NCBI GenBank assembly: GCA_965644495.1
Contig: CBFFSA010000001.1
Location: 2,480,001-2,544,000, forward strand
DNA from: Perkinsela sp. CCAP 1560/9
Lineage: Eukaryota > Protista > Euglenozoa: Kinetoplastea
DNA length: 64,000 nucleotides
Direction: 5' to 3'
Shown: piece by piece, positions 2,331 to 49,331 of the stretch
How positions within the stretch are numbered: position 1 is the first letter of the stretch
Layout: every line of letters begins with the position of its first letter
Program-made: the position numbers and the translations under genes
The notes under the pieces: generated by a model
What the model was told of the DNA's origin: nothing
Databases searched by the model: none
Seen by the model: only the letters and a program-made list of their open reading frames with translations

Positions 2331-2720
2331 TTGTTTGTTTTGTTTTATCACAAGGCCGTTTGTCTCCGAAGAGATATGGCCCCCTAGTTCCAGCCTAGGT
2401 CCGCTGTGCGGATGCTGATGCTCGAAGCATCTGTGCCAACACAGGAGTAATCTCAACCATAGAGGGCACACACCCGACTTATCCTCCTATGAAAGGAAAC
2501 CAATAATTATTAGCTCCAGGGTAGGAGGGGTTCGCTACTCCCCAGCGTGGATTAACAAGTTAATCCACTACCCTGCCTTAATAAAACTCTTGAAAATGTA
2601 ATTGGGCCTTTGTACTAGTGTCAGGAATTAAACATGAAGGATTTATTCGTGAACTACGGTATGATATTATTTGCAAAATTAGACAGACTTTTCTTATTTG
2701 TATTTCGCACGAATAAAAGT

Positions 2721-2759
2721 TGACTTTAACGATAAAGATACAGTTTCTGTACCTTGTTG
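2721..2759 (+). other. Spliced-leader exon-like 39-mer (not an SL RNA gene) between 34-bp direct repeats
   Basis: TGACTTTAACGATAAAGATACAGTTTCTGTACCTTGTTG. GATACAGTTTCTGTAC...TTG lies in the same register as kinetoplastid SL exons. No GT intron follows. Confidence 0.85.
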
Positions 2760-2793
2760 ACTTTTCTTATTTGTATTTCGCACGAATAAAAGT

Positions 2794-4295
2794 GAAAAGA
2801 GACATTACGGATCCAAAAAGAGATGCAGTGTGCCAGAAGAGCTCAACAAGCAATACGCCGCACAAAGGGTTATGCTCCCAGAGGAAGTAGAGAGTCAAGT
2901 CAATGAGGTTATGGCGACCATGCAACAGAATGACATAGAAGTCGAAGTAACCTGGTTCCCCGTTGGAGGTAGGAAAGAGACAGCGACAACATGGCGAGGT
3001 ACGGTAGAGGACAATGGAGACGAGGAAAATCCTATCATTGTTCCCTACCCATGGGGTAACTATCCTCTGCCTAATAGCAACGTGTGTTATACGCGCATCG
3101 TGATATCAGCAAGTGAGCCAAAGATGCCAGGCAAATTGCCCGAATCGGACGATGAAACTGCACCATCAGAAGAGACGAACGACAGTTTCAACCCCCGGGA
3201 CGTTACAACATAGAACACATACATTACCCAGGGGCCACTAGGGATTGAAATATTGAAACAGCGGTTGCGAACGGCGCTGGATCTCCCTTCTCGAATGTCG
3301 CCACAGCTACAAGCCCTTTGGGATATCTTGTGTGCTTGGATAGACGATAGCGCAGAAAGAGGGGGCGTGAACAGCGACGCCGTCAATCACAAAAACGTCG
3401 GCCAAAGCACAGTTGACCAGATACGCATTCTGCAAGGAATATATCGAGGAGCAGATGCTTGATATATACGCTCACAATACGTTACCCAGAAAGACCCACA
3501 GGACCGACTTGGTAATGTAATTGAGCAAAGCGTAACCTACAATCAAGCAACCACGTATACGAGCCGTGGACCCCAGCGGACCCGCTATACGCCTCGCATG
3601 CCGATACGAGGGCGAGTATATGCAAATCGGACCCCCATAAATCGGACTGGCATACTAGAACATGGCATTACGCGTCAAGCGACCATCGCACCACGCGCTC
3701 CGGATTTTCGTGGACGGGGGATCGGTCCACAGCACTGACTCTCAAGAGTCCTCCCCCCGAGGAAAAGCAAGTACACACCAATAAAAAGGAAGTTAAAAGA
3801 TCAAATACAGAATCTAAAATACAAAAATATCAATATGAAGCAGAACACGAAAACGAAAATTAAAATACAAAGTCAAATTGCAATAAACAAAGCAAGTACA
3901 AAACGGAAAAACATTTATCAGCCAGTATTACAGACCAGCACCTCTATCCGACCCGTTTGCAAGACACAAACGGAAAAACTACCGTCCCACACGTGCAAAG
4001 TTCGAATCAGCAATATCGATACCCACAGATCCACTACCCGACGTATCATCACCAAGGCTCATCGTCAGACCAATGGATCCCACATCAAAATATCGAATAT
4101 TACCCAGCCACCGAGACACAACATACCAGGAACAGACCCCCTTACGTTATGTCCAATTTCCTCAACATGACATCTCCTTCGGTAATGGAGACGTTGAAGC
4201 CTATGTGTGCGGAGACAACATGGACTACCAGGTGCCGTCTGCTATGCCATATGCGGAGTTTGGGAATACCCATTACGGATACGGGGGTCATACGA
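2794..4295 (+). mobile_element. YR retrotransposon 5' part: ORF1 pseudogene (2794-3738, in-frame stops at 3211 and 3460) plus truncated recombinase
   Basis: Matches 12980-14481 of the longer copy. ORF1 aligns with the 17055-18384 protein. Confidence 0.8.
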
Positions 4296-5686
4296 GTTTT
4301 TTTTCTTTCAGTTTGGTACTGAACCGTCGTGTCATACGTCTTCACGTGCGCACCCTTATAGGCTTCTTTTCCATTCCAGATCACGAATGGTGGAACCAAA
4401 TCACCGCTTAAAGATGCAGCAGTTACAAGAGTTGCGCTTCGTTTGTCTCCTACTGCAATGCTATGCGCTTCTTGCCCCTGATATGTTAAGCCACGCTCCG
4501 CAAGAGAATTATAGGCGACGGCAGTTTCGTCCATGTTAATTAGAAGAGGGGAAATAACCTTGTCGTTCCATTCTATGCCTACATAATAACATATACGCAG
4601 TAGCATATCTCGCGCAAGGTCGTTTAAATTTGTTGGTAGAGCGCCTTCGGGTGTATTTCTTGTCGATTTCATCGAAATATCCATTTTCGACAGCCACCGG
4701 ATGAAGGTATGATAGGATGGTATAAACGTTTCTTCATCTTTTACCTTGGCACCAGATTTAACTTTGTCTACGAGATGTTTCGTTAGATAATCAATGTCGT
4801 CAGAATCGTGCATGATTGCTTCACGTGTAATTGCCCAGAGCAGGTTCTTACCTACAGGAATTCCGTAAAATATTAGCTCATTCAATAGCCTGCGAATGAG
4901 GGGTTCATAGAATGACAACATGCTTGGTCGTTGGTTAGATGTATTCTTAGGAATTAAGGACTCGTCTCCGAGCTTCTCGCGTTTTTGCCACCAAAGACGA
5001 AGAATTTGATATTCGATTTGTTCAGCAATGCTCGGATATACAGATTTCAGTTTTTTGCATAGGTTAGTGTAATGAGGAAACCGTCCTCCCCTCTTTGGGA
5101 GACGTACGAAGTAGTCTGATTGATGCATGAAATAATCCATGGAATCACACAGACAAATCTTCACGTTGGAGACGAATTGCTTCTTTACGCAATGTGACAT
5201 TTCCACATGTTCAGAATCATCGTCTTCAGCGAGAGGAGCATCACTACTTTCATCACTCATTGAGCGCGGCGCATCAACGCTTCGCGCCGTCCAACAAAAA
5301 GAAAACGAAAATTGAAGCGACGTAGAATTATCGTCCCAGAATATTGGTATGCCGTCGCCGTTAAGACTAAATAAACCTCCATGAAATTTACATGCTATCA
5401 TTTCACGCTCCTTGCGCTCCTCAATAATGAACTTGGTACGGTCTTCAAGCAATAAAGTTTCGACGTAACTGAGAAAAAGAGATTCATGCTCACTCGCAAA
5501 TGATTGGAACATATTTACAAAAAGTTCCTTAAAAAAAGAATTTTCCCCTCCATTTTCTAAGCAGGATGTAAGAAAACGCCGCTTTTTCTCCATCCATCGA
5601 GGAGGGGGTCGGCCGGATACGCTAGTAAATTGTTCAATGCTGCCTACGTTCTGATCTTGTCCCCTTTTCCCCTTCGGTCGTGACAT
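4296..5686 (-). pseudogene. pogo/Tigger-like (CENP-B HTH + DDE_1) transposase, 3'-truncated; the ORF runs on antisense through YR sequence to 4142
   Basis: FIPSYHTFIRWL (HTH end), LINMDETAV (first catalytic D), KRSATLVTAASLSGDLVPPFVIWNGK. The remaining catalytic residues are lost at the unit junction. Confidence 0.85.
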
Positions 5687-7423: not shown

Positions 7424-7813
7424 TTGTTTGTTTTGTTTTATCACAAGGCCGTTTGTCTCCGAAGAGATATGGCCCCCTAGTTCCAGCCTAGGTCCGCTGT
7501 GCGGATGCTGATGCTCGAAGCATCTGTGCCAACACAGGAGTAATCTCAACCATAGAGGGCACACACCCGACTTATCCTCCTATGAAAGGAAACCAATAAT
7601 TATTAGCTCCAGGGTAGGAGGGGTTCGCTACTCCCCAGCGTGGATTAACAAGTTAATCCACTACCCTGCCTTAATAAAACTCTTGAAAATGTAATTGGGC
7701 CTTTGTACTAGTGTCAGGAATTAAACATGAAGGATTTATTCGTGAACTACGGTATGATATTATTTGCAAAATTAGACAGACTTTTCTTATTTGTATTTCG
7801 CACGAATAAAAGT

Positions 7814-7852
7814 TGACTTTAACGATAAAGATACAGTTTCTGTACCTTGTTG
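7814..7852 (+). other. SL exon-like 39-mer (copy 2)
   Basis: Identical to 2721-2759. Confidence 0.85.
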
Positions 7853-7886
7853 ACTTTTCTTATTTGTATTTCGCACGAATAAAAGT

Positions 7887-9388
7887 GAAAAGAGACATTA
7901 CGGATCCAAAAAGAGATGCAGTGTGCCAGAAGAGCTCAACAAGCAATACGCCGCACAAAGGGTTATGCTCCCAGAGGAAGTAGAGAGTCAAGTCAATGAG
8001 GTTATGGCGACCATGCAACAGAATGACATAGAAGTCGAAGTAACCTGGTTCCCCGTTGGAGGTAGGAAAGAGACAGCGACAACATGGCGAGGTACGGTAG
8101 AGGACAATGGAGACGAGGAAAATCCTATCATTGTTCCCTACCCATGGGGTAACTATCCTCTGCCTAATAGCAACGTGTGTTATACGCGCATCGTGATATC
8201 AGCAAGTGAGCCAAAGATGCCAGGCAAATTGCCCGAATCGGACGATGAAACTGCACCATCAGAAGAGACGAACGACAGTTTCAACCCCCGGGACGTTACA
8301 ACATAGAACACATACATTACCCAGGGGCCACTAGGGATTGAAATATTGAAACAGCGGTTGCGAACGGCGCTGGATCTCCCTTCTCGAATGTCGCCACAGC
8401 TACAAGCCCTTTGGGATATCTTGTGTGCTTGGATAGACGATAGCGCAGAAAGAGGGGGCGTGAACAGCGACGCCGTCAATCACAAAAACGTCGGCCAAAG
8501 CACAGTTGACCAGATACGCATTCTGCAAGGAATATATCGAGGAGCAGATGCTTGATATATACGCTCACAATACGTTACCCAGAAAGACCCACAGGACCGA
8601 CTTGGTAATGTAATTGAGCAAAGCGTAACCTACAATCAAGCAACCACGTATACGAGCCGTGGACCCCAGCGGACCCGCTATACGCCTCGCATGCCGATAC
8701 GAGGGCGAGTATATGCAAATCGGACCCCCATAAATCGGACTGGCATACTAGAACATGGCATTACGCGTCAAGCGACCATCGCACCACGCGCTCCGGATTT
8801 TCGTGGACGGGGGATCGGTCCACAGCACTGACTCTCAAGAGTCCTCCCCCCGAGGAAAAGCAAGTACACACCAATAAAAAGGAAGTTAAAAGATCAAATA
8901 CAGAATCTAAAATACAAAAATATCAATATGAAGCAGAACACGAAAACGAAAATTAAAATACAAAGTCAAATTGCAATAAACAAAGCAAGTACAAAACGGA
9001 AAAACATTTATCAGCCAGTATTACAGACCAGCACCTCTATCCGACCCGTTTGCAAGACACAAACGGAAAAACTACCGTCCCACACGTGCAAAGTTCGAAT
9101 CAGCAATATCGATACCCACAGATCCACTACCCGACGTATCATCACCAAGGCTCATCGTCAGACCAATGGATCCCACATCAAAATATCGAATATTACCCAG
9201 CCACCGAGACACAACATACCAGGAACAGACCCCCTTACGTTATGTCCAATTTCCTCAACATGACATCTCCTTCGGTAATGGAGACGTTGAAGCCTATGTG
9301 TGCGGAGACAACATGGACTACCAGGTGCCGTCTGCTATGCCATATGCGGAGTTTGGGAATACCCATTACGGATACGGGGGTCATACGA
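7887..9388 (+). mobile_element. YR retrotransposon 5' part (copy 2)
   Basis: Copy of 2794-4295. Confidence 0.8.
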
Positions 9389-10779
9389 GTTTTTTTTCTT
9401 TCAGTTTGGTACTGAACCGTCGTGTCATACGTCTTCACGTGCGCACCCTTATAGGCTTCTTTTCCATTCCAGATCACGAATGGTGGAACCAAATCACCGC
9501 TTAAAGATGCAGCAGTTACAAGAGTTGCGCTTCGTTTGTCTCCTACTGCAATGCTATGCGCTTCTTGCCCCTGATATGTTAAGCCACGCTCCGCAAGAGA
9601 ATTATAGGCGACGGCAGTTTCGTCCATGTTAATTAGAAGAGGGGAAATAACCTTGTCGTTCCATTCTATGCCTACATAATAACATATACGCAGTAGCATA
9701 TCTCGCGCAAGGTCGTTTAAATTTGTTGGTAGAGCGCCTTCGGGTGTATTTCTTGTCGATTTCATCGAAATATCCATTTTCGACAGCCACCGGATGAAGG
9801 TATGATAGGATGGTATAAACGTTTCTTCATCTTTTACCTTGGCACCAGATTTAACTTTGTCTACGAGATGTTTCGTTAGATAATCAATGTCGTCAGAATC
9901 GTGCATGATTGCTTCACGTGTAATTGCCCAGAGCAGGTTCTTACCTACAGGAATTCCGTAAAATATTAGCTCATTCAATAGCCTGCGAATGAGGGGTTCA
10001 TAGAATGACAACATGCTTGGTCGTTGGTTAGATGTATTCTTAGGAATTAAGGACTCGTCTCCGAGCTTCTCGCGTTTTTGCCACCAAAGACGAAGAATTT
10101 GATATTCGATTTGTTCAGCAATGCTCGGATATACAGATTTCAGTTTTTTGCATAGGTTAGTGTAATGAGGAAACCGTCCTCCCCTCTTTGGGAGACGTAC
10201 GAAGTAGTCTGATTGATGCATGAAATAATCCATGGAATCACACAGACAAATCTTCACGTTGGAGACGAATTGCTTCTTTACGCAATGTGACATTTCCACA
10301 TGTTCAGAATCATCGTCTTCAGCGAGAGGAGCATCACTACTTTCATCACTCATTGAGCGCGGCGCATCAACGCTTCGCGCCGTCCAACAAAAAGAAAACG
10401 AAAATTGAAGCGACGTAGAATTATCGTCCCAGAATATTGGTATGCCGTCGCCGTTAAGACTAAATAAACCTCCATGAAATTTACATGCTATCATTTCACG
10501 CTCCTTGCGCTCCTCAATAATGAACTTGGTACGGTCTTCAAGCAATAAAGTTTCGACGTAACTGAGAAAAAGAGATTCATGCTCACTCGCAAATGATTGG
10601 AACATATTTACAAAAAGTTCCTTAAAAAAAGAATTTTCCCCTCCATTTTCTAAGCAGGATGTAAGAAAACGCCGCTTTTTCTCCATCCATCGAGGAGGGG
10701 GTCGGCCGGATACGCTAGTAAATTGTTCAATGCTGCCTACGTTCTGATCTTGTCCCCTTTTCCCCTTCGGTCGTGACAT
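9389..10779 (-). pseudogene. pogo-like transposase, 3'-truncated (second full copy)
   Basis: Identical translation to the 4142..5686 ORF. Confidence 0.85.
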
Positions 10780-12516: not shown

Positions 12517-12906
12517 TTGTTTGTTTTGTTTTATCACAAGGCCGTTTGTCTCCGAAGAGATATGGCCCCCTAGTTCCAGCCTAGGTCCGCTGTGCGGATG
12601 CTGATGCTCGAAGCATCTGTGCCAACACAGGAGTAATCTCAACCATAGAGGGCACACACCCGACTTATCCTCCTATGAAAGGAAACCAATAATTATTAGC
12701 TCCAGGGTAGGAGGGGTTCGCTACTCCCCAGCGTGGATTAACAAGTTAATCCACTACCCTGCCTTAATAAAACTCTTGAAAATGTAATTGGGCCTTTGTA
12801 CTAGTGTCAGGAATTAAACATGAAGGATTTATTCGTGAACTACGGTATGATATTATTTGCAAAATTAGACAGACTTTTCTTATTTGTATTTCGCACGAAT
12901 AAAAGT

Positions 12907-12945
12907 TGACTTTAACGATAAAGATACAGTTTCTGTACCTTGTTG
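12907..12945 (+). other. SL exon-like 39-mer (copy 3)
   Basis: Identical to 2721-2759. Confidence 0.85.
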
Positions 12946-12979
12946 ACTTTTCTTATTTGTATTTCGCACGAATAAAAGT

Positions 12980-13924
12980 GAAAAGAGACATTACGGATCC
13001 AAAAAGAGATGCAGTGTGCCAGAAGAGCTCAACAAGCAATACGCCGCACAAAGGGTTATGCTCCCAGAGGAAGTAGAGAGTCAAGTCAATGAGGTTATGG
13101 CGACCATGCAACAGAATGACATAGAAGTCGAAGTAACCTGGTTCCCCGTTGGAGGTAGGAAAGAGACAGCGACAACATGGCGAGGTACGGTAGAGGACAA
13201 TGGAGACGAGGAAAATCCTATCATTGTTCCCTACCCATGGGGTAACTATCCTCTGCCTAATAGCAACGTGTGTTATACGCGCATCGTGATATCAGCAAGT
13301 GAGCCAAAGATGCCAGGCAAATTGCCCGAATCGGACGATGAAACTGCACCATCAGAAGAGACGAACGACAGTTTCAACCCCCGGGACGTTACAACATAGA
13401 ACACATACATTACCCAGGGGCCACTAGGGATTGAAATATTGAAACAGCGGTTGCGAACGGCGCTGGATCTCCCTTCTCGAATGTCGCCACAGCTACAAGC
13501 CCTTTGGGATATCTTGTGTGCTTGGATAGACGATAGCGCAGAAAGAGGGGGCGTGAACAGCGACGCCGTCAATCACAAAAACGTCGGCCAAAGCACAGTT
13601 GACCAGATACGCATTCTGCAAGGAATATATCGAGGAGCAGATGCTTGATATATACGCTCACAATACGTTACCCAGAAAGACCCACAGGACCGACTTGGTA
13701 ATGTAATTGAGCAAAGCGTAACCTACAATCAAGCAACCACGTATACGAGCCGTGGACCCCAGCGGACCCGCTATACGCCTCGCATGCCGATACGAGGGCG
13801 AGTATATGCAAATCGGACCCCCATAAATCGGACTGGCATACTAGAACATGGCATTACGCGTCAAGCGACCATCGCACCACGCGCTCCGGATTTTCGTGGA
13901 CGGGGGATCGGTCCACAGCACTGA
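12980..13924 (+). pseudogene. ORF1 (Gag-like) of YR element A, two nonsense codons, 5'-incomplete
   Basis: One frame from 12980 to TGA 13924 with TAG and TGA interruptions; the TAG sits where the paralogue has Trp. Confidence 0.75.
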
Positions 13925-14142
13925 CTCTCAAGAGTCCTCCCCCCGAGGAAAAGCAAGTACACACCAATAAAAAGGAAGTTAAAAGATCAAATACAGAATC
14001 TAAAATACAAAAATATCAATATGAAGCAGAACACGAAAACGAAAATTAAAATACAAAGTCAAATTGCAATAAACAAAGCAAGTACAAAACGGAAAAACAT
14101 TTATCAGCCAGTATTACAGACCAGCACCTCTATCCGACCCGT

Positions 14143-15177
14143 TTGCAAGACACAAACGGAAAAACTACCGTCCCACACGTGCAAAGTTCGAATCAGCAAT
14201 ATCGATACCCACAGATCCACTACCCGACGTATCATCACCAAGGCTCATCGTCAGACCAATGGATCCCACATCAAAATATCGAATATTACCCAGCCACCGA
14301 GACACAACATACCAGGAACAGACCCCCTTACGTTATGTCCAATTTCCTCAACATGACATCTCCTTCGGTAATGGAGACGTTGAAGCCTATGTGTGCGGAG
14401 ACAACATGGACTACCAGGTGCCGTCTGCTATGCTATATGCGGAGTTTGGGAATACCCATTACGGATACGGGGGTCATACGATTTATTATGGGACGCCCGA
14501 TATCTACACAGACCAAGCTCACGTACCTAAAACACCTTATAGCAATTTTGAAGCGACTGGAACTCTGTACGCGGCAATCCCAAATGTACACGAAAGTGTT
14601 GATCCGCAAGGGGGCATCTATCCCACAGCACCAGGCGGCCCCAGTAACCAAGAAGGATTTGCAGAAAACGCTTATGAGCATGCCGGAAGACAGAGCAGTG
14701 GTTGCACTCCTTGCTTTCAAAATAGCTTCCCGGGCTGGGGAAATCGCCAAGCTACGCAGGAAGGATGCTATAGTGCTCCGCCCGTCACGTATTACCATCA
14801 ACTGGGGTACGAAATCGAAAACCTCCAAGGCACAACCATTCCGCCCCGACAATCTAGTGGTAATCGAGGGAGAAACCACCAGGCGTATCTACAACTACTT
14901 GAAGAGGTTAAGCCCGCATCAGCGGATCAGTAACTGTACAACACAAGACCTCACTCGGACGCTCAAGAAAGGACTGGGGAGCAATTACAGTTCCCACTCC
15001 TTCAAGCATGGATCAGTCCAATGCCTGATGTGGCAAGTCGCCAAAGGCTCCATAACTATACCGCAAGTCATGCAGCTGGCCAAACACAAACAATTGTCAA
15101 CCCTTATGCGCTATGCAGGTATGAACGAGACTACTGCACTGGCACTAGGAAGTCAGAAGCTGACCAAACTCCTATGA
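14143..15177 (+). CDS. Tyrosine recombinase of YR element A (catalytic domain uninterrupted)
   Basis: KIASRAGEI (R), KSKTSK (K), SHSFKHG (H-x-x-K-H), LAKHKQLSTLMRY (H...Y). The frame extends up to 13888 with one TAA at 14047. Confidence 0.88.
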   Translation: MQDTNGKTTVPHVQSSNQQYRYPQIHYPTYHHQGSSSDQWIPHQNIEYYPATETQHTRNRPPYVMSNFLNMTSPSVMETLKPMCAETTWTTRCRLLCYMRSLGIPITDTGVIRFIMGRPISTQTKLTYLKHLIAILKRLELCTRQSQMYTKVLIRKGASIPQHQAAPVTKKDLQKTLMSMPEDRAVVALLAFKIASRAGEIAKLRRKDAIVLRPSRITINWGTKSKTSKAQPFRPDNLVVIEGETTRRIYNYLKRLSPHQRISNCTTQDLTRTLKKGLGSNYSSHSFKHGSVQCLMWQVAKGSITIPQVMQLAKHKQLSTLMRYAGMNETTALALGSQKLTKLL

Positions 15178-15494
15178 AATCTAAGACGCTCGAATACCAA
15201 GGTGGGTGGATCGGAATCACGGAGAAAATGCAGTACGGTATTCGACGTACGATAACCAGAATGTTTCGCCGAACATGCCGCCCTACGGCGGAGCAGATGC
15301 AGACGCTACCTATCCACGCGAAACATGTACCGCCGCTGTACCTGGAACGTTTAACTTCTTTGATGAATGCGCCTACGCGAGAACGCTTCACACAAGTGTG
15401 GGAACTACTTATTAACCCAACGAACGATGCACCAATCACCACTATACCTCTCGTAGCTCCCACATGTCTGAGCAAGAAAGACGTATGCATCTTG
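15174..15494 (+). pseudogene. N-terminus of the third (putative RT/RNase H) ORF of element A, truncated
   Basis: RPTAEQMQTLPIHAKHV...RFTQVW aligns with RPTQEMMQTLPIHARRV...RFDQIW in element B. RT identity is inferred from position; no catalytic motif is present. Confidence 0.6.
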
Positions 15495-22917: not shown

Positions 22918-24842
22918 TGGTCGCGGACAAGGCGAACAAGACGTTGTCGGTTATTGACTCCGGGGTGGGTATGACGAAAGCGGACTTGGTGAATAACCTC
23001 GGCACGATTGCTCGATCCGGCACCAAGGCGTTCATGGAGGCCCTGGAATCGGGTGCGGACCTCAGTATGATCGGACAATTCGGTGTCGGGTTCTACTCGG
23101 CCTACCTGGTCGCGGACAAAGTCACTGTCGTCTCGAAGCACAATGACGACGAGGCGCACGTTTGGGAATCCTCCGCGGGTGGCACCTTCACTGTGGCTCC
23201 CTGCCCCTCGGCCCCAGTGAAGCGGGGGACAATGATCACGCTGCACCTGAAGGAGGACCAACAGGAGTACCTGGAAGAGCGACGACTGAAGGACCTCGTG
23301 AAGAAGCACTCCGAGTTCATCGGCTACGACATCGAGCTACAAGTGGAGCGCACCACGGAGAAGGAAGTTACGGACGACGAGGCGGAGGAGGAAAAGGCGG
23401 AGGAAGTGAAACCGGAGGGAGGGGAGGACGAGCCCAAGGTAGAGGAGGCGGAGGAACCCCAGGAGGTGAAGAAGAAGACAAAGAAGGTGAAGGACGTCTC
23501 CGTGGAGTATGAGGTGCTGAACAAGAACAAGCCTCTGTGGACAAAGGATCCGAAGGAGGTGTCACAGGAGGAATACGCCGCCTTCTACAAGACCATCAGC
23601 AACGACTGGGAGGAGCATCTCTCCGTCAAACACTTTAGCGTGGAAGGGCAGCTGGAATTCCGCGCAGTACTGTTCGTCCCGAAGCGTGCTCCATTCGACA
23701 TGTTCGAGCCCAATCGCAAGCGAAACAACATTAAGCTGTACGTGCGTCGTGTCTTCATTATGGACAACTGTGAGGAGATCTGTCCGGAGTGGCTGGCGTT
23801 CATTCGAGGCGTCGTCGACAGCGAAGACCTTCCGTTGAACATCTCCCGTGAGAACCTGCAGCAGAACAAAATCCTGAAGGTGATCCGGAAGAACGTCGTG
23901 AAGAAGGCGGTGGAGTTGTTCGAAGAGCTTGCTGCGGATAAGGACAGTTACAAGAAGTTCTATGAGCACTTCGGGAAGAACATCAAGCTTGGCATTCATG
24001 AGGATGCGACGAACCGAACCAAACTTTGCGAACTGCTACGCTACAACAGCACGAAGAGCGGCGAAGATGCTACGAGCTTGAAGGACTACGTCACCCGCAT
24101 GAAGGAGGGCCAGAAGAGCATCTACTACATCACGGGAGACAGTCGCAAGAAGCTTGAGACATCCCCCTTCCTCGAAGAAGCCAAGCGGCGTGATATGGAA
24201 GTCCTGTTCATGGTGGATCCCATTGATGAATACGTCATGCAGCAGCTCAAGGACTTTGAGGATAAGAAATTCGTGTGTCTCACCAAGGAGGGCGTCAAGT
24301 TTGAAGAAACGGAGGAGGAGAAGAAGGCACGGGAGGAGAACAAAGCATCCTTCGAGAAGCTTTGCACGACGATCAAAGAGATTCTTGGTGAGAAGGTGGA
24401 CAAGGTTGTGCTCACCGAGCGCTTGGCGACCTCCCCCTGTATCCTGGTTACCTCTGAACACGGGTGGAGTGCACACATGGAACAGATCATGAAGCACCAA
24501 GCCCTGCGAGACGCTTCCATGTCCTCGTACATGGTGTCAAAGAAGACAATGGAGATCAATCCGCACCACAGCATTATTAAGGAGCTCCGACGTAAAGCGG
24601 ATACTGATCAGAACGACAAGACCGTGAAGGATCTCGTCATGCTCCTCTTCGATACCGCGTTGTTGACCTCAGGGTTTAACCTTGAAGATCCTTCCTCCTA
24701 CGGCGAACGCATCCACCGCATGGTGAAACTCGGCCTCTCCATCGATGACGACGAGCTTCCCCCTGCCCCCGTGGCGGCCAGCTCGGAAATGGATGCTGAC
24801 GATCTTGCGGAGGGCGAAGGACGTATGCAGGAGGTCGATTAA
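22918..24842 (+). CDS. HSP90: Cytosolic HSP90 (HSP83), 5' end in gap
   Basis: [50 protein letters not shown]-terminal MQEVD. Confidence 0.97.
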
Positions 24843-25311
24843 GTCGCTTATCGGTTGATCCTATGAGATCACATTCGGGGAAGGAAATCAATTGCTAAAT
24901 TTGATCTTTTTGCTTTTTACGAATTAAGTTCAAGGAACGCTGAAATGCAAGATAATCGCCAGGTTGAGCAAGATATGACACTTTGCTCCTGCAATATCTT
25001 TTGTTTTGTGCGAATCAAAGCAGTTCGTTACGCATGACAATTGTTCACCTTATGCTAGTTTCAAACAGTAAAGTTATTCACGCAACTTTAGGCGACTGGG
25101 TGATGGTATAAACTATGATATACTCATATGATAAGTACTCCTTTTTAAAGTTAATGTTGGCAATATTCGGGATTTATATTAGAACCTCTTCTTCCTTGCT
25201 TGTATACTTTGCTAGACCTTATTCGAACTGTTCTTGCAGCCATATTCACCGATTTCACACAGAAATACTAGCCTTCTTTTTCATTTTCCTCTCTTTCCAC
25301 TGCATTCCACA

Positions 25312-27429
25312 ATGTCGGAAACATTTGCGTTCCAAGCGGAGATCAATCAGCTGATGTCTCTCATCATCAACACCTTTTACAGCAATAAGGAGATTTTCTT
25401 ACGCGAGCTGATCAGCAACTCTTCCGACGCCCTGGATAAGATTCGGTATCAAAGCCTTACGAACCCTGAAGTTCTTTCTGCGGATGAGAAGTTGCACATT
25501 CAATTGGTCGCGGACAAGGCGAACAAGACGTTGTCGGTTATTGACTCCGGGGTGGGTATGACGAAAGCGGACTTGGTGAATAACCTCGGCACGATTGCTC
25601 GATCCGGCACCAAGGCGTTCATGGAGGCCCTGGAATCGGGTGCGGACCTCAGTATGATCGGACAATTCGGTGTCGGGTTCTACTCGGCCTACCTGGTCGC
25701 GGACAAAGTCACTGTCGTCTCGAAGCACAATGACGACGAGGCGCACGTTTGGGAATCCTCCGCGGGTGGCACCTTCACTGTGGCTCCCTGCCCCTCGGCC
25801 CCAGTGAAGCGGGGGACAATGATCACGCTGCACCTGAAGGAGGACCAACAGGAGTACCTGGAAGAGCGACGACTGAAGGACCTCGTGAAGAAGCACTCCG
25901 AGTTCATCGGCTACGACATCGAGCTACAAGTGGAGCGCACCACGGAGAAGGAAGTTACGGACGACGAGGCGGAGGAGGAAAAGGCGGAGGAAGTGAAACC
26001 GGAGGGAGGGGAGGACGAGCCCAAGGTAGAGGAGGCGGAGGAACCCCAGGAGGTGAAGAAGAAGACAAAGAAGGTGAAGGACGTCTCCGTGGAGTATGAG
26101 GTGCTGAACAAGAACAAGCCTCTGTGGACAAAGGATCCGAAGGAGGTGTCACAGGAGGAATACGCCGCCTTCTACAAGACCATCAGCAACGACTGGGAGG
26201 AGCATCTCTCCGTCAAACACTTTAGCGTGGAAGGGCAGCTGGAATTCCGCGCAGTACTGTTCGTCCCGAAGCGTGCTCCATTCGACATGTTCGAGCCCAA
26301 TCGCAAGCGAAACAACATTAAGCTGTACGTGCGTCGTGTCTTCATTATGGACAACTGTGAGGAGATCTGTCCGGAGTGGCTGGCGTTCATTCGAGGCGTC
26401 GTCGACAGCGAAGACCTTCCGTTGAACATCTCCCGTGAGAACCTGCAGCAGAACAAAATCCTGAAGGTGATCCGGAAGAACGTCGTGAAGAAGGCGGTGG
26501 AGTTGTTCGAAGAGCTTGCTGCGGATAAGGACAGTTACAAGAAGTTCTATGAGCACTTCGGGAAGAACATCAAGCTTGGCATTCATGAGGATGCGACGAA
26601 CCGAACCAAACTTTGCGAACTGCTACGCTACAACAGCACGAAGAGCGGCGAAGATGCTACGAGCTTGAAGGACTACGTCACCCGCATGAAGGAGGGCCAG
26701 AAGAGCATCTACTACATCACGGGAGACAGTCGCAAGAATCTTGAGACATCCCCCTTCCTCGAAGAAGCCAAGCGGCGTGATATGGAAGTCCTGTTCATGG
26801 TGGATCCCATTGATGAATACGTCATGCAGCAGCTCAAGGACTTTGAGGATAAGAAATTCGTGTGTCTCACCAAGGAGGGCGTCAAGTTTGAAGAAACGGA
26901 GGAGGAGAAGAAGGCACGGGAGGAGAACAAAGCATCCTTCGAGAAGCTTTGCACGACGATCAAAGAGATTCTTGGTGAGAAGGTGGACAAGGTTGTGCTC
27001 ACCGAGCGCTTGGCGACCTCCCCCTGTATCCTGGTTACCTCTGAACACGGGTGGAGTGCACACATGGAACAGATCATGAAGCACCAAGCCCTGCGAGACG
27101 CTTCCATGTCCTCGTACATGGTGTCAAAGAAGACAATGGAGATCAATCCGCACCACAGCATTATTAAGGAGCTCCGACGTAAAGCGGATACTGATCAGAA
27201 CGACAAGACCGTGAAGGATCTCGTCATGCTCCTCTTCGATACCGCGTTGTTGACCTCAGGGTTTAACCTTGAAGATCCTTCCTCCTACGGCGAACGCATC
27301 CACCGCATGGTGAAACTCGGCCTCTCCATCGATGACGACGAGCTTCCCCCTGCCCCCGTGGCGGCCAGCTCGGAAATGGATGCTGACGATCTTGCGGAGG
27401 GCGAAGGACGTATGCAGGAGGTCGATTAA
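25312..27429 (+). CDS. HSP90: Cytosolic HSP90 (705 aa from [10 protein letters not shown])
   Basis: All HSP90 signatures, including [21 protein letters not shown]. The true ATG is at 25312. Confidence 0.99.
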
Positions 27430-27898
27430 GTCGCTTATCGGTTGATCCTATGAGATCACATTCGGGGAAGGAAATCAATTGCTAAATTTGATCTTTTTGC
27501 TTTTTACGAATTAAGTTCAAGGAACGCTGAAATGCAAGATAATCGCCAGGTTGAGCAAGATATGACACTTTGCTCCTGCAATATCTTTTGTTTTGTGCGA
27601 ATCAAAGCAGTTCGTTACGCATGACAATTGTTCACCTTATGCTAGTTTCAAACAGTAAAGTTATTCACGCAACTTTAGGCGACTGGGTGATGGTATAAAC
27701 TATGATATACTCATATGATAAGTACTCCTTTTTAAAGTTAATGTTGGCAATATTCGGGATTTATATTGGAACCTCTTCTTCCTTGCTTGTATACTTTGCT
27801 AGACCTTATTCGAACTGTTCTTGCAGCCATATTCACCGATTTCACACAGAAATACTAGCCTTCTTTTTCATTTTCCTCTCTTTCCACTGCATTCCACA

Positions 27899-30016
27899 AT
27901 GTCGGAAACATTTGCGTTCCAAGCGGAGATCAATCAGCTGATGTCTCTCATCATCAACACCTTTTACAGCAATAAGGAGATTTTCTTACGCGAGCTGATC
28001 AGCAACTCTTCCGACGCCCTGGATAAGATTCGGTATCAAAGCCTTACGAACCCTGAAGTTCTTTCTGCGGATGAGAAGTTGCACATTCAATTGGTCGCGG
28101 ACAAGGCGAACAAGACGTTGTCGGTTATTGACTCCGGGGTGGGTATGACGAAAGCGGACTTGGTGAATAACCTCGGCACGATTGCTCGATCCGGCACCAA
28201 GGCGTTCATGGAGGCCCTGGAATCGGGTGCGGACCTCAGTATGATCGGACAATTCGGTGTCGGGTTCTACTCGGCCTACCTGGTCGCGGACAAAGTCACT
28301 GTCGTCTCGAAGCACAATGACGACGAGGCGCACGTTTGGGAATCCTCCGCGGGTGGCACCTTCACTGTGGCTCCCTGCCCCTCGGCCCCAGTGAAGCGGG
28401 GGACAATGATCACGCTGCACCTGAAGGAGGACCAACAGGAGTACCTGGAAGAGCGACGACTGAAGGACCTCGTGAAGAAGCACTCCGAGTTCATCGGCTA
28501 CGACATCGAGCTACAAGTGGAGCGCACCACGGAGAAGGAAGTTACGGACGACGAGGCGGAGGAGGAAAAGGCGGAGGAAGTGAAACCGGAGGGAGGGGAG
28601 GACGAGCCCAAGGTAGAGGAGGCGGAGGAACCCCAGGAGGTGAAGAAGAAGACAAAGAAGGTGAAGGACGTCTCCGTGGAGTATGAGGTGCTGAACAAGA
28701 ACAAGCCTCTGTGGACAAAGGACCCGAAGGAGGTGTCACAGGAGGAATACGCCGCCTTCTACAAGACCATCAGCAACGACTGGGAGGAGCATCTCTCCGT
28801 CAAACACTTTAGCGTGGAAGGGCAGCTGGAATTCCGCGCAGTACTGTTCGTCCCGAAGCGTGCTCCATTCGACATGTTCGAGCCCAATCGCAAGCGAAAC
28901 AACATTAAGCTGTACGTGCGTCGTGTCTTCATTATGGACAACTGTGAGGAGATCTGTCCGGAGTGGCTGGCGTTCATTCGAGGCGTCGTCGACAGCGAAG
29001 ACCTTCCGTTGAACATCTCCCGTGAGAACCTGCAGCAGAACAAAATCCTGAAGGTGATCCGGAAGAACGTCGTGAAGAAGGCGGTGGAGTTGTTCGAAGA
29101 GCTTGCTGCGGATAAGGACAGTTACAAGAAGTTCTATGAGCACTTCGGGAAGAACATCAAGCTTGGCATTCATGAGGATGCGACGAACCGAACCAAACTT
29201 TGCGAACTGCTACGCTACAACAGCACGAAGAGCGGCGAAGATGCTACGAGCTTGAAGGACTACGTCACCCGCATGAAGGAGGGCCAGAAGAGCATCTACT
29301 ACATCACGGGAGACAGTCGCAAGAAGCTTGAGACATCCCCCTTCCTCGAAGAAGCCAAGCGGCGTGATATGGAAGTCCTGTTCATGGTGGATCCCATTGA
29401 TGAATACGTCATGCAGCAGCTCAAGGACTTTGAGGATAAGAAATTCGTGTGTCTCACCAAGGAGGGCGTCAAGTTTGAAGAAACGGAGGAGGAGAAGAAG
29501 GCACGGGAGGAGAACAAAGCATCCTTCGAGAAGCTTTGCACGACGATCAAAGAGATTCTTGGTGAGAAGGTGGACAAGGTTGTGCTCACCGAGCGCTTGG
29601 CGACCTCCCCCTGTATCCTGGTTACCTCTGAACACGGGTGGAGTGCACACATGGAACAGATCATGAAGCACCAAGCCCTGCGAGACGCTTCCATGTCCTC
29701 GTACATGGTGTCACAGAAGACAATGGAGATCAATCCGCACCACAGCATTATTAAGGAGCTCCGACGTAAAGCGGATACTGATCAGAACGACAAGACCGTG
29801 AAGGATCTCGTCATGCTCCTCTTCGATACCGCGTTGTTGACCTCAGGGTTTAACCTTGAAGATCCTTCCTCCTACGGCGAACGCATCCACCGCATGGTGA
29901 AACTCGGCCTCTCCATCGATGACGACGAGCTTCCCCCTGCCCCCGTGGCGGCCAGCTCGGAAATGGATGCTGACGATCTTGCGGAGGGCGAAGGACGTAT
30001 GCAGGAGGTCGATTAA
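27899..30016 (+). CDS. HSP90: Cytosolic HSP90
   Basis: As above. Confidence 0.99.
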
Positions 30017-30485
30017 GTCGCTTATCGGTTGATCCTATGAGATCACATTCGGGGAAGGAAATCAATTGCTAAATTTGATCTTTTTGCTTTTTACGAATTA
30101 AGTTCAAGGAACGCTGAAATGCAAGATAATCGCCAGGTTGAGCAAGATATGACACTTTGCTCCTGCAATATCTTTTGTTTTGTGCGAATCAAAGCAGTTC
30201 GTTACGCATGACAATTGTTCACCTTATGCTAGTTTCAAACAGTAAAGTTATTCACGCAACTTTAGGCGACTGGGTGATGGTATAAACTATGATATACTCA
30301 TATGATAAGTACTCCTTTTTAAAGTTAATGTTGGCAATATTCGGGATTTATATTGGAACCTCTTCTTCCTTGCTTGTATACTTTGCTAGACCTTATTCGA
30401 ACTGTTCTTGCAGCCATATTCACCGATTTCACACAGAAATACTAGCCTTCTTTTTCATTTTCCTCTCTTTCCACTGCATTCCACA

Positions 30486-32603
30486 ATGTCGGAAACATTT
30501 GCGTTCCAAGCGGAGATCAATCAGCTGATGTCTCTCATCATCAACACCTTTTACAGCAATAAGGAGATTTTCTTACGCGAGCTGATCAGCAACTCTTCCG
30601 ACGCCCTGGATAAGATTCGGTATCAAAGCCTTACGAACCCTGAAGTTCTTTCTGCGGATGAGAAGTTGCACATTCAATTGGTCGCGGACAAGGCGAACAA
30701 GACGTTGTCTGTTATTGACTCCGGGGTGGGTATGACGAAAGCGGACTTGGTGAATAACCTCGGCACGATTGCTCGATCCGGCACCAAGGCGTTCATGGAG
30801 GCCCTGGAATCGGGTGCGGACCTCAGTATGATCGGACAATTCGGTGTCGGGTTCTACTCGGCCTACCTGGTCGCGGACAAAGTCACTGTCGTCTCGAAGC
30901 ACAATGACGACGAGGCGCACGTTTGGGAATCCTCCGCGGGTGGCACCTTCACTGTGGCTCCCTGCCCCTCGGCCCCAGTGAAGCGGGGGACAATGATCAC
31001 GCTGCACCTGAAGGAGGACCAACAGGAGTACCTGGAAGAGCGACGACTGAAGGACCTCGTGAAGAAGCACTCCGAGTTCATCGGCTACGACATCAAGCTA
31101 CAAGTGGAGCGCACCACGGAGAAGGAAGTTACGGACGACGAGGCGGAGGAGGAAAAGGCGGAGGAAGTGAAACCGGAGGGAGGGGAGGACGAGCCCAAGG
31201 TAGAGGAGGCGGAGGAACCCCAGGAGGTGAAGAAGAAGACAAAGAAGGTGAAGGACGTCTCCGTGGAGTATGAGGTGCTGAACAAGAACAAGCCTCTGTG
31301 GACAAAGGACCCGAAGGAGGTGTCACAGGAGGAATACGCCGCCTTCTACAAGACCATCAGCAACGACTGGGAGGAGCATCTCTCCGTCAAACACTTTAGC
31401 GTGGAAGGGCAGCTGGAATTCCGCGCAGTACTGTTCGTCCCGAAGCGTGCTCCATTCGACATGTTCGAGCCCAATCGCAAGCGAAACAACATTAAGCTGT
31501 ACGTGCGTCGTGTCTTCATTATGGACAACTGTGAGGAGATCTGTCCGGAGTGGCTGGCGTTCATTCGAGGCGTCGTCGACAGCGAAGACCTTCCGTTGAA
31601 CATCTCCCGTGAGAGCCTGCAGCAGAACAAAATCCTGAAGGTGATCCGGAAGAACGTCGTGAAGAAGGTGGTGGAGTTGTTCGAAGTGCTTGCTGCGGAT
31701 AAGGACAGTTACAAGAAGTTCTATGAGCACTTCGGGAAGAACATCAAGCTTGGCATTCATGAGGATGCGACGAACCGAACCAAACTTTGCGAACTGCTAC
31801 GCTACAACAGCACGAAGAGCGGCGAAGATGCTACGAGCTTGAAGGACTACGTCACCCGCATGAAGGAGGGCCAGAAGAGCATCTACTACATCACGGGAGA
31901 CAGTCGCAAGAAGCTTGAGACATCCCCCTTCCTCGAAGAAGCCAAGCGGCGTGATATGGAAGTCCTGTTCATGGTGGATCCCATTGATGAATACGTCATG
32001 CAGCAGCTCAAGGACTTTGAGGATAAGAAATTCGTGTGTCTCACCAAGGAGGGCGTCAAGTTTGAAGAAACGGAGGAGGAGAAGAAGGCACGGGAGGAGA
32101 ACAAAGCGTCCTTCGAGAAGCTTTGCACGACGATCAAAGAGATTCTTGGTGAGAAGGTGGACAAGGTTGTGCTCACCGAGCGCTTGGCGACCTCCCCCTG
32201 TATCCTGGTTACCTCTGAACACGGGTGGAGTGCACACATGGAACAGATCATGAAGCACCAAGCCCTGCGAGACGCTTCCATGTCCTCGTACATGGTGTCA
32301 AAGAAGACAATGGAGATCAATCCGCACCACAGCATTATTAAGGAGCTCCGACGTAAAGCGGATACTGATCAGAACGACAAGACCGTGAAGGATCTCGTCA
32401 TGCTCCTCTTCGATACCGCGTTGTTGACCTCAGGGTTTAACCTTGAAGATCCTTCCTCCTACGGCGAACGCATCCACCGCATGGTGAAACTCGGCCTCTC
32501 CATCGATGACGACGAGCTTCCCCCTGCCCCCGTGGCGGCCAGCTCGGAAATGGATGCTGACGATCTTGCGGAGGGCGAAGGACGTATGCAGGAGGTCGAT
32601 TAA
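30486..32603 (+). CDS. HSP90: Cytosolic HSP90
   Basis: As above; four amino-acid differences from copy 1. Confidence 0.99.
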
Positions 32604-33072
32604 GTCGCTTATCGGTTGATCCTATGAGATCACATTCGGGGAAGGAAATCAATTGCTAAATTTGATCTTTTTGCTTTTTACGAATTAAGTTCAAGGAACG
32701 CTGAAATGCAAGATAATCGCCAGGTTGAGCAAGATATGACACTTTGCTCCTGCAATATCTTTTGTTTTGTGCGAATCAAAGCAGTTCGTTACGCATGACA
32801 ATTGTTCACCTTATGCTAGTTTCAAACAGTAAAGTTATTCACGCAACTTTAGGCGACTGGGTGATGGTATAAACTATGATATACTCATATGATAAGTACT
32901 CCTTTTTAAAGTTAATGTTGGCAATATTCGGGATTTATATTGGAACCTCTTCTTCCTTGCTTGTATACTTTGCTAGACCTTATTCGAACTGTTCTTGCAG
33001 CCATATTCACCGATTTCACACAGAAATACTAGCCTTCTTTTTCATTTTCCTCTCTTTCCACTGCATTCCACA

Positions 33073-35190
33073 ATGTCGGAAACATTTGCGTTCCAAGCGG
33101 AGATCAATCAGCTGATGTCTCTCATCATCAACACCTTTTACAGCAATAAGGAGATTTTCTTACGCGAGCTGATCAGCAACTCTTCCGACGCCCTGGATAA
33201 GATTCGGTATCAAAGCCTTACGAACCCTGAAGTTCTTTCTGCGGATGAGAAGTTGCACATTCAATTGGTCGCGGACAAGGCGAACAAGACGTTGTCGGTT
33301 ATTGACTCCGGGGTGGGTATGACGAAAGCGGACTTGGTGAATAACCTCGGCACGATTGCTCGATCCGGCACCAAGGCGTTCATGGAGGCCCTGGAATCGG
33401 GTGCGGACCTCAGTATGATCGGACAATTCGGTGTCGGGTTCTACTCGGCCTACCTGGTCGCGGACAAAGTCACTGTCGTCTCGAAGCACAATGACGACGA
33501 GGCGCACGTTTGGGAATCCTCCGCGGGTGGCACCTTCACTGTGGCTCCCTGCCCCTCGGCCCCAGTGAAGCGGGGGACAATGATCACGCTGCACCTGAAG
33601 GAGGACCAACAGGAGTACCTGGAAGAGCGACGACTGAAGGACCTCGTGAAGAAGCACTCCGAGTTCATCGGCTACGACATCAAGCTACAAGTGGAGCGCA
33701 CCACGGAGAAGGAAGTTACGGACGACGAGGCGGAGGAGGAAAAGGCGGAGGAAGTGAAACCGGAGGGAGGGGAGGACGAGCCCAAGGTAGAGGAGGCGGA
33801 GGAACCCCAGGAGGTGAAGAAGAAGACAAAGAAGGTGAAGGACGTCTCCGTGGAGTATGAGGTGCTGAACAAGAACAAGCCTCTGTGGACAAAGGACCCG
33901 AAGGAGGTGTCACAGGAGGAATACGCCGCCTTCTACAAGACCATCAGCAACGACTGGGAGGAGCATCTCTCCGTCAAACACTTTAGCGTGGAAGGGCAGC
34001 TGGAATTCCGCGCAGTACTGTTCGTCCCGAAGCGTGCTCCATTCGACATGTTCGAGCCCAATCGCAAGCGAAACAACATTAAGCTGTACGTGCGTCGTGT
34101 CTTCATTATGGACAACTGTGAGGAGATCTGTCCGGAGTGGCTGGCGTTCATTCGAGGCGTCGTCGACAGCGAAGACCTTCCGTTGAACATCTCCCGTGAG
34201 AACCTGCAGCAGAACAAAATCCTGAAGGTGATCCGGAAGAACGTCGTGAAGAAGGCGGTGGAGTTGTTCGAAGAGCTTGCTGCGGATAAGGACAGTTACA
34301 AGAAGTTCTATGAGCACTTCGGGAAGAACATCAAGCTTGGCATTCATGAGGATGCGACGAACCGAACCAAACTTTGCGAACTGCTACGCTACAACAGCAC
34401 GAAGAGCGGCGAAGATGCTACGAGCTTGAAGGACTACGTCACCCGCATGAAGGAGGGCCAGAAGAGCATCTACTACATCACGGGAGACAGTCGCAAGAAG
34501 CTTGAGACATCCCCCTTCCTCGAAGAAGCCAAGCGGCGTGATATGGAAGTCCTGTTCATGGTGGATCCCATTGATGAATACGTCATGCAGCAGCTCAAGG
34601 ACTTTGAGGATAAGAAATTCGTGTGTCTCACCAAGGAGGGCGTCAAGTTTGAAGAAACGGAGGAGGAGAAGAAGGCACGGGAGGAGAACAAAGCGTCCTT
34701 CGAGAAGCTTTGCACGACGATCAAAGAGATTCTTGGTGAGAAGGTGGACAAGGTTGTGCTCACCGAGCGCTTGGCGACCTCCCCCTGTATCCTGGTTACC
34801 TCTGAACACGGGTGGAGTGCACACATGGAACAGATCATGAAGCACCAAGCCCTGCGAGACGCTTCCATGTCCTCGTACATGGTGTCAAAGAAGACAATGG
34901 AGATCAATCCGCACCACAGCATTATTAAGGAGCTCCGACGTAAAGCGGATACTGATCAGAACGACAAGACCGTGAAGGATCTCGTCATGCTCCTCTTCGA
35001 TACCGCGTTGTTGACCTCAGGGTTTAACCTTGAAGATCCTTCCTCCTACGGCGAACGCATCCACCGCATGGTGAAACTCGGCCTCTCCATCGATGACGAC
35101 GAGCTTCCCCCTGCCCCCGTGGCGGCCAGCTCGGAAATGGATGCTGACGATCTTGCGGAGGGCGAAGGACGTATGCAGGAGGTCGATTAA
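33073..35190 (+). CDS. HSP90: Cytosolic HSP90
   Basis: As above. Confidence 0.99.
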
Positions 35191-35659
35191 GTCGCTTATC
35201 GGTTGATCCTATGAGATCACATTCGGGGAAGGAAATCAATTGCTAAATTTGATCTTTTTGCTTTTTACGAATTAAGTTCAAGGAACGCTGAAATGCAAGA
35301 TAATCGCCAGGTTGAGCAAGATATGACACTTTGCTCCTGCAATATCTTTTGTTTTGTGCGAATCAAAGCAGTTCGTTACGCATGACAATTGTTCACCTTA
35401 TGCTAGTTTCAAACAGTAAAGTTATTCACGCAACTTTAGGCGACTGGGTGATGGTATAAACTATGATATACTCATATGATAAGTACTCCTTTTTAAAGTT
35501 AATGTTGGCAATATTCGGGATTTATATTGGAACCTCTTCTTCCTTGCTTGTATACTTTGCTAGACCTTATTCGAACTGTTCTTGCAGCCATATTCACCGA
35601 TTTCACACAGAAATACTAGCCTTCTTTTTCATTTTCCTCTCTTTCCACTGCATTCCACA

Positions 35660-49044: not shown

Positions 49045-49331
49045 GGATCGAGTGATTATTTAACATGCTAAAGTCTTGGGCGACTATTGAGCAAAAGCAC
49101 ACTCGAACTGGACTCCATTTTTTGTCGCAAAAGAGTTGCTTACACCTGTTTTGCTGTTTTTATTGACTTTACATTTAGCTCTACATTTTACTCTTACACA
49201 AATCATACGAAGTATACAGTAGCCTGCAGTGTATGACAGTGTTTATAAAACGTTGCACTCAAACAGTTCACTTAACCTCCGCAACACTACTAAACCCTTT
49301 ACACTTGTAACTACAACCCCACACTTCAAAA

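Follow-up and report, generated by a model that had tools for sequence, protein, structure and literature searches.

We analysed a 64,000-nucleotide (64-kb) stretch of the genome of Perkinsela sp. CCAP 1560/9 (contig CBFFSA010000001.1, positions 2,480,001 to 2,544,000, forward strand), hereafter the window, and found near its left end a copy of the organism's own spliced leader (SL) exon lying between two copies of a short repeat. At this locus lies the 5' end of a VIPER-like tyrosine-recombinase (YR) retrotransposon, and the repeat is the last part, here called R, of the element's terminal repeat A. We propose that the insert is probably a DNA fossil of the SL that headed the genomic RNA of this VIPER-like element, and that the arrangement A-SL-R arose when reverse transcriptase (RT) overshot the end of R and then switched template. 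The proposal draws on the identity of the SL, on the way its 3' end meets splice-acceptor AG dinucleotides at three separate loci, and on the origin of the repeat sequence that stands upstream of it.

A spliced leader joined to a retrotransposon repeat

The 38 nt at window positions 2722-2759, which contain CAGTTTCTGTAC, match the exon of the SL RNA gene at 37 of 38 positions, and the sole mismatch is at nt 1 (G instead of A). The SL RNA gene lies at C1:~661.3 kb as two 297-bp tandem units beside a 5S rRNA gene (RF00001, 99 bits), and each unit consists of a 38-nt exon, AAC...CTTGTTG, followed by a GTATGAG intron and a structured tail. A preliminary description of the window had taken the insert for an SL exon, to be checked against the SL of the species, and the gene agrees with it in all but the first base. 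A contig from a public transcriptome, encoding exactly the PEPCK of the window, starts with the last 27 nt of the SL joined to the 5' untranslated region (UTR). The genome has unrelated sequence where this transcript has the SL, showing that the SL is added to the mRNA by trans-splicing. Look-ups of HSP90, Skp1 and epimerase for a full-length SL on transcripts returned no transcript contigs, and only the PEPCK transcript shows the SL. As a separate observation on PEPCK, the transcript contig (L076:1-40) joins the SL to ACCCTTTACAC, and comparison with window positions 49285-49300 gives AA, not AG, as the apparent acceptor dinucleotide; the genome and a second assembly both read ...CTACTAA/ACCC at this point.

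The SL in the window is bounded by an exact 35-nt direct repeat (2686-2720 and 2759-2793), for which the chance expectation is none. The preliminary description had noted a duplicated 34-mer (2687-2720 and 2760-2793), and the repeat proves to be one shared G longer; in the first copy this G belongs to the acceptor AG, and in the second it is the last G of the SL. Copy 1 is preceded by ACAG (2683-2686, the AG being 2685-2686) and copy 2 by the terminal TTG of the SL, and between the copies stand a T (2721) and then the 38 nt of the SL. The earlier figure of exactly 39 nt for the exon therefore needs amending: the exon is 38 nt long when counted from the conserved AAC start, and reaches 39 only with the preceding T. 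The SL RNA gene has a T at the same place too, and the true exon start is ambiguous.

On its 3' side the window SL continues with ACTTTTC rather than GTATGAG, with no GT and no intron sequence, and in SL-free copies of the family this ACTTTTC segment comes after an AG. The 3' end of the SL is thus joined to the very base that follows the AG in unspliced copies, which upholds the earlier reading of the insert as an SL in trans-spliced configuration and not an SL RNA gene. A search of the entire 64-kb window against Rfam gave no family match, again indicating that the locus is not an RNA gene. We assign no structural role to the hairpin that can be drawn in the 34-mer, which is weak (-3.9 kcal/mol, z -1.4). 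The features of the locus are as follows.

2582 to 2720, plus strand: repeat A1, made up of a U3-like part (2582-2686) and R-like copy 1 (2687-2720); the 5' boundary of the element is at 2582.
2681 to 2686, plus strand: two alternative putative trans-splice acceptor AGs (AG/ACAG/), of which 2685-2686 is used in the window copy and the equivalent of 2681-2682 at C4:655323 and C9:761017.
2721 to 2759, plus strand: SL relic, consisting of the 38-nt exon match (2722-2759; G for A at nt 1) and, before it, the T at 2721, whose origin is uncertain.
2760 to 2793, plus strand: R-like copy 2, identical to 2687-2720 and corresponding to the first 34 nt of the inferred trans-spliced element RNA.
2794 to 4299, plus strand: internal part of the element with an ORF1 remnant and the start of the YR open reading frame (ORF), cut by the array junction 4299/4305 (compared with the canonical copies L041, L042 and L063).

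The element family is small, with ~20 A ends genome-wide and ~7 independent 5' ends, four without the SL and three with an SL junction. SL-free 5' ends are found at C4:497.9 kb, at C9:771.6 kb and in a C2/C54 pair with identical flanks, to which solo copies are added. The copies at C4:497.9 kb, C9:771.6 kb and C2/C54 read ...TTAGACAG followed by the 34-mer, GG and ORF1. A comparison with copies lacking the insert had been suggested in the preliminary description, and in these SL-free copies the 34-mer stands once before ORF1.

The SL is joined to the R segment at exactly three loci: the window array, C4:655323 and C9:761017. In the window, A is followed by a T, the full SL and an R that begins after ACAG. 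At C4:655323, A is followed by GG and a 43-nt CT-rich filler, then by the SL from ~nt 2 and by an R that begins four bases earlier, after TTAG. At C9:761017, A is followed by GGA and the first ~62 nt of the element's other repeat, B, then by only the last 15 nt of the SL and an R that again begins after TTAG. The SL 3' end (..CTTGTTG) is accordingly joined to ACTTTTC in the window and to ACAGACTTTTC at C4:655323 and C9:761017, and at all three loci it is intact and abuts the base that follows an AG in unspliced sequence. The C4 and C9 loci are embedded in unique flanks. Intact SL 3' ends on two different AGs at three loci are a signature of trans-splicing, recorded independently three times, and the position of the SL at the AG argues that it derives from reverse transcription of a trans-spliced transcript of this type of locus. 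The 43-nt filler (C4:655252) occurs only once in the genome. On the C9 contig we also observed, upstream of A1 of the full copy L064 (reverse strand, C9:~761260), a flank reading ...AGTACCTTGTT/AT with a 10-nt match to the SL 3' end; this match may be due to chance or may be a decayed SL relic at the integration site.

The element and the source of its upstream repeat

Repeat A ends with the repeated 34-mer, which makes up its last 34 nt and begins just after the acceptor AG. At the other end of A, the boundary at 2582 is set by the flanks of all family copies, which diverge upstream of AAAACTCTTG. We examined two full copies, L063 (C4:654601-660600) and L064 (C9:755801-761800, reverse strand), which are 5.1 kb long and carry A a second time, as A2, near the 3' end. 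Their split direct repeats stand in the order A1...B1-A2-B2, with two copies of A (~145-154 bp) and two of B (270 bp). In L063 the A repeats are at 498-651 and 5186-5339 (99%) and the B repeats at 4922-5191 and 5360-5629 (100%), and L064 has the same layout. Solo A-B units are also present (L056 at C10:94394, ~94.4 kb, minus strand; L059 at C17:115119, ~115.1 kb, plus strand).

The full copies encode an ORF1 of 416-432 aa, a tyrosine recombinase, and an RT/RNase H ORF that lies downstream of the YR ORF and overlaps it. ORF1 has no Pfam match and is taken as a domain-less, gag-like protein. PF00589 (Phage_integrase) was matched by the window ORF at 14143-15177 (E 1.7e-6, 28.4 bits, cut-off 27.1) and by ORF2 of L063 (32.9 bits). 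ORF3 of L063 (899 aa) scores above the cut-off for RT_RNaseH (26.5 bits) and below it for RVT_1 (19.7 bits), and the nearest named relative of the RT in a homology search is a transcript of the prokinetoplastid PhM-4 with 34% identity. We call the element VIPER-like from the order of its ORFs, the Pfam matches and the repeat layout. In the window, a deletion that starts exactly at the end of A has removed the start codon of ORF1 along with ~330 nt, and a second deletion has taken ~80 nt more.

The sequences on the upstream side of the three SL junctions point to their template. At C9, the A before the SL runs into the first ~62 nt of B, as only A2 does, and the join from B to the SL shows TT microhomology within similar AAGATA contexts. 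At C4, A continues with GGCC, like the A2/B2 linker and unlike GGAAATGG, which follows A1. The U3-like part of the window copy departs from the family in 4 places over 108 nt, namely three substitutions and one 5-nt deletion, and 485 nt of the internal sequence are 100% identical to the C54 copy. A diverged U3 part and an identical internal part indicate that two templates were joined across the SL. The template for the upstream side of the SL was the 3' (A2/B2) part of an element RNA.

Junctions recur at the end of A in this family: there A borders on internal sequence, on B, on the SL and on sequence with an internal deletion. Three linkers that differ from one another, with microhomology (GTGGA, AAAG), connect A and B, and two different deletions of ORF1 begin immediately after A. 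The linkers from A to B (L056, L059, L063:5335-5360) consist of a 22-nt C-rich filler, AAAGGGGTGGA, GGA or nothing, and share microhomology with the bases immediately preceding B1, as though template switching had re-made the joint.

How the junctions may have formed

In the mechanism that we propose, the element RNA would be trans-spliced inside A1, either 34 or 38 nt before the end of A. It would then start with the SL and with R (the final 34-38 nt of A) and would keep one complete A, namely A2, near its presumed 3' end. During normal replication the missing upstream A1 would be rebuilt from A2, with transfer of the cDNA via homology within R. In the fossil copies RT, presumably that of the element itself, would have skipped the transfer at R and run on into the SL, as far as the cap region twice and as far as nt 25 once. 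Synthesis would then have started again in the 3' A2/B2 region, on the same RNA or on a second one, at a point that was non-homologous or microhomologous. The product would be A(U3+R), in some cases a filler, SL, R and internal sequence, in the form of a cDNA that then integrated. After integration, the window copy would have lost part of ORF1 and its 3' end and would have been multiplied fourfold via a 5,093-bp tandem segmental duplication.

The preliminary description had offered "mRNA recycling" as one explanation of the insert. Its core, the reverse transcription of a trans-spliced RNA, is retained here, but the term is too general: the RNA was the genomic RNA of a YR retrotransposon, and a by-product of replication is the best reading of the junctions. 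On balance we also favour a wider proposal, in which the VIPER-like YR elements of this lineage replicate from SL-trans-spliced RNA, A takes the role of a U3-R unit, and a strand transfer via the R of 34-38 nt rebuilds the 5' repeat from A2. The junctions would then be overshot transfers and would form part of a genome-wide "SL-capped mobilome".

Several points weigh against template switching on an SL-headed RNA. The SL-R junction and the R segment are absent from the public metagenome and transcriptome contigs that we scanned, and a search for homologues of ORF1 gave none derived from a transcript, the one match being a 5'-truncated genomic copy without repeat A. Trans-splicing at the AGs of repeat A is read from DNA alone, and the polypyrimidine tract before these acceptors is weak. 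Since no poly(A) separates the end of A from the SL, the acceptor of the template switch would not have been a polyadenylated end, and the three acceptor points differ (the end of A; the end of A with the 43-nt CT-rich filler; position ~62 of B). Copies carrying B2 are not fully explained by the simple model. There are only three independent events, and their structure is compatible with template switching and with joining at the DNA level alike.

Joining at the DNA level is the main rival to template switching. It assumes the same RNA origin, with an SL-headed cDNA end-joined or recombined onto an older genomic A, or with the RT of one of the abundant SL-headed elements without long terminal repeats (non-LTR elements) acting in trans. 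The greater divergence of the U3 part (4/108 nt) than of the internal part (0/485 nt) would fit such an origin, solo A-B copies are available as possible recipients, and hundreds of head-to-tail junctions of poly(A) and SL in this genome show that some RT often jumps from the capped 5' end. However, homologous recombination via R would lose the SL rather than keep it between two copies of R, and end joining gives no reason why the left junction should lie at or near the end of A in three events. The chimeric structure, for its part, is explained equally well by inter-molecular template switching. We consider a DNA-level join unlikely, while regarding it as a serious competitor.

The exact direct repeat around the insert, the presence of non-LTR elements nearby and the repeated sequence that abuts the start of A1 would suit a quite different origin, also raised in the preliminary description: a free SL exon or SL RNA retro-inserted by target-primed reverse transcription, perhaps by CRE-type machinery, with a target-site duplication of 34-35 bp. 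This is very improbable. The supposed target-site duplication is the 3' end of A and runs exactly from the acceptor to the end of A, so that the left boundary of the insert is the end of the element's own repeat; the right junction is an intact SL 3' end on an AG acceptor at three loci and on two AGs; and neither poly(A) nor intron sequence is present. The other loci have 38-40-nt versions of the duplication, use the second AG and carry A2/B2-derived fillers, with only the last 15 nt of the SL after B sequence at C9 and the 43-nt filler at C4. Insertion of the SLACS/CZAR/CRE type would split the SL exon and is ruled out by the intact SL of the window, which is uninterrupted and intron-less and lies 1.8 Mb from the SL RNA/5S locus. 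We can give hardly any credence to an assembly artefact or cDNA contamination. The array is highly repetitive, but the junction is present in all four of its units and again in a second public assembly (ENA ERZ24900291, ctg3939l), which has the same A-SL-R junction and differs at 13 positions over 13.5 kb. Analogous but different junctions stand in unique flanks at two further loci, and a cDNA would lack the U3 part that stands upstream of the SL.

Relics in the wider genome and known systems

Sequences derived from the SL are abundant in this genome. A 12-nt core of the SL occurs 533 times in 21 Mb, compared with 5 occurrences of a reversed control, and we found 216 near-full relics. In many of these a poly(A) run comes immediately before the SL, forming the head-to-tail junction that cDNA would be expected to give. 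For 100 of the 216 relics, the three bases before TTTAACG are xTC in 57, AAC in 18, GAC in five and other bases in 20, counts that include many non-independent family copies and come from a search pattern that fixed the rest of the SL. The relics with AAC, the bases of the SL gene, comprise the two SL genes and 16 copies behind poly(A), and four of the five with GAC are those of the window array. Variation among relics is thus found mainly at nt 1-2. It is plausible that the deviating first bases come from miscopying of the cap-4 nucleotides, with which the variation at nt 1-2 is compatible, and the first bases of relics may hold a readable signature of the hypermodified cap.

Other SL-bearing sequences were observed alongside these relics. 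Several retroelement families begin with an SL relic (C1-C25), among them one in which the relic is followed by aattatttcccc...ATGGGAGGGCACC. In a dispersed family (L001, L004, L007, L009, L011, L022, L028-L030) the SL, whether partial or full, precedes GTACATTTT...CCCGGAAACGGGCATA; this family keeps the GT after the exon, is unlike the SL RNA intron in sequence, and may be an SL-RNA-derived mobile element. Intron-bearing SL RNA copies number only ~7 in the assembly (C1:661298-661662, C2:801597, C20:10930, C25:23921, C49:34372, C1:410088). The tandem pair adjoins the 5S rRNA gene, and the dispersed copies start with AGC, not AAC. Some seven copies are few for a kinetoplastid-type genome; possible causes are a collapsed array or retro-copying of unspliced SL RNA.

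Within the window, the locus belongs to a segmental tandem repeat with a period of 5,093 bp, which extends from 5,880 bp upstream of the window to 14484 and has ~four units, one of them upstream of the window. The units are 99.8-100% identical, with the internal junction 4299/4305, and the A-SL-R arrangement recurs at +5,093 and +10,186 bp. Since the duplicated units are nearly identical, we count the array as one SL event that was amplified later. The preliminary description had placed the insert in all three array units; it is indeed present in each, but four units exist and they do not support one another independently. Each unit holds flanking repeats and only the first 1.7 kb of the element, which continues to ~15494 in the last unit alone, where it is colinear with positions 1100-3597 of L063 at 98.4%. 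The corresponding features are listed here.

7675 to 7886, plus strand: second A1-SL-R arrangement in the window, with the SL relic at 7815-7852 and R copy 2 at 7853-7886.
12768 to 12979, plus strand: third A1-SL-R arrangement in the window (fourth of the array), with the SL relic at 12908-12945 and R copy 2 at 12946-12979; the only unit where the element continues past the end of the array.
12980 to 15494, plus strand: continuation of the element in the last unit, including the YR ORF (14143-15177) and 3'-truncated near 15494.

The other ORFs of the array have no Pfam match. Among them is a 514-aa ORF on the minus strand (4142-5686 and 9235-10779) with an NMDETAV motif, which spans the array junction 4299/4305, so that its last ~54 codons are chimeric in the array units. 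An 18-bp tandem repeat (~5 units, AAAAAGGGGGTGATAAAC) lies at 2038-2139, inside the repeated element that abuts the start of A1. Farther along the window, at 22944-37777, at least five HSP90 genes stand in tandem with a period of 2,587 bp. This HSP90 array, the SL core, the linkage of SL and 5S genes and the VIPER-like elements all suggest a euglenozoan of kinetoplastid type.

The window element has the same three-ORF order, gag-like, tyrosine recombinase and RT/RNase H, as VIPER/TATE elements (order DIRS). It also resembles them in the layout and sizes of its repeats: VIPER/TATE repeats are arranged as A1...B1-A2-B2, with an A of 173 bp and a B of 219 bp in T. cruzi and of 136-144 and 288-308 bp in Crithidia (PMC6681497), and the window family has an A of ~145 bp and a B of 270 bp. 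SIRE corresponds to A2+B2 (PMC6681497). No SL is known to have been reported inside VIPER/TATE DNA, and PMC6681497 makes no mention of the spliced leader, whereas the window family carries one. The solo A-B units of the window family are comparable to SIRE. In T. cruzi, SIRE supplies trans-splice acceptor sites to neighbouring genes.

To our knowledge, reverse transcription and the rebuilding of ends in Ngaro, PAT and VIPER/TATE elements have only been modelled and never observed. For YR retrotransposons that have split direct repeats, the three junctions described here would be natural records of end rebuilding. They place the template RNA's 5' end at two putative trans-splice acceptors inside repeat A, show that the upstream repeat was copied from the 3' A2/B2 region, and single out the end of A as a recurrent transfer point. 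If these elements do replicate from SL-trans-spliced RNA, the junctions would provide, for the first time, direct sequence evidence of the way in which this class restores its ends, and an SL-capped mobilome is not known to have been described for kinetoplastid-type genomes. In the literature we found no precedent for this SL sequence or for SL relics in kinetoplastids or in YR retrotransposons.

SLACS, CZAR and CRE are likewise kinetoplastid retroelements that are physically tied to SL sequence. They insert in SL RNA genes and split the exon near nt 11/12. The exon in the window is instead intact and intron-less; it is found away from the SL gene locus, at a splice acceptor with element sequence following it. 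A further parallel is the first strand transfer of retroviruses and LTR retrotransposons, in which strong-stop DNA of R-U5 is transferred to the 3' R. There, as proposed here for the R of 34-38 nt, a short redundancy lets the full 5' repeat be rebuilt, and the window fossil resembles a transfer that overshot R. We draw this likeness for an inferred transfer, and claim no membership of the LTR class: the window element has a tyrosine recombinase and an extra B2, and we identified in it no primer-binding site, integrase or LTR-type ends.

The closest counterparts of the relic itself are the relict SLs in the genomic DNA of dinoflagellates, where retrogenes carry them as a result of "mRNA recycling" (PMC5585692, PMC6050394). 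The dinoflagellate relics occupy the same trans-spliced position and are likewise the footprint of a reverse-transcribed, mature trans-spliced RNA; they come from cellular mRNAs, lie upstream of ordinary genes, and are often stacked and truncated by renewed trans-splicing. The reverse transcription of SL-capped mature RNA into the genome, known as a major force in dinoflagellates, is common in a kinetoplastid-type genome too, as the junctions show. The window relic differs from its dinoflagellate counterparts in that it would record a retrotransposon's own genomic RNA, and in that it stands between two R-like copies within a terminal repeat.
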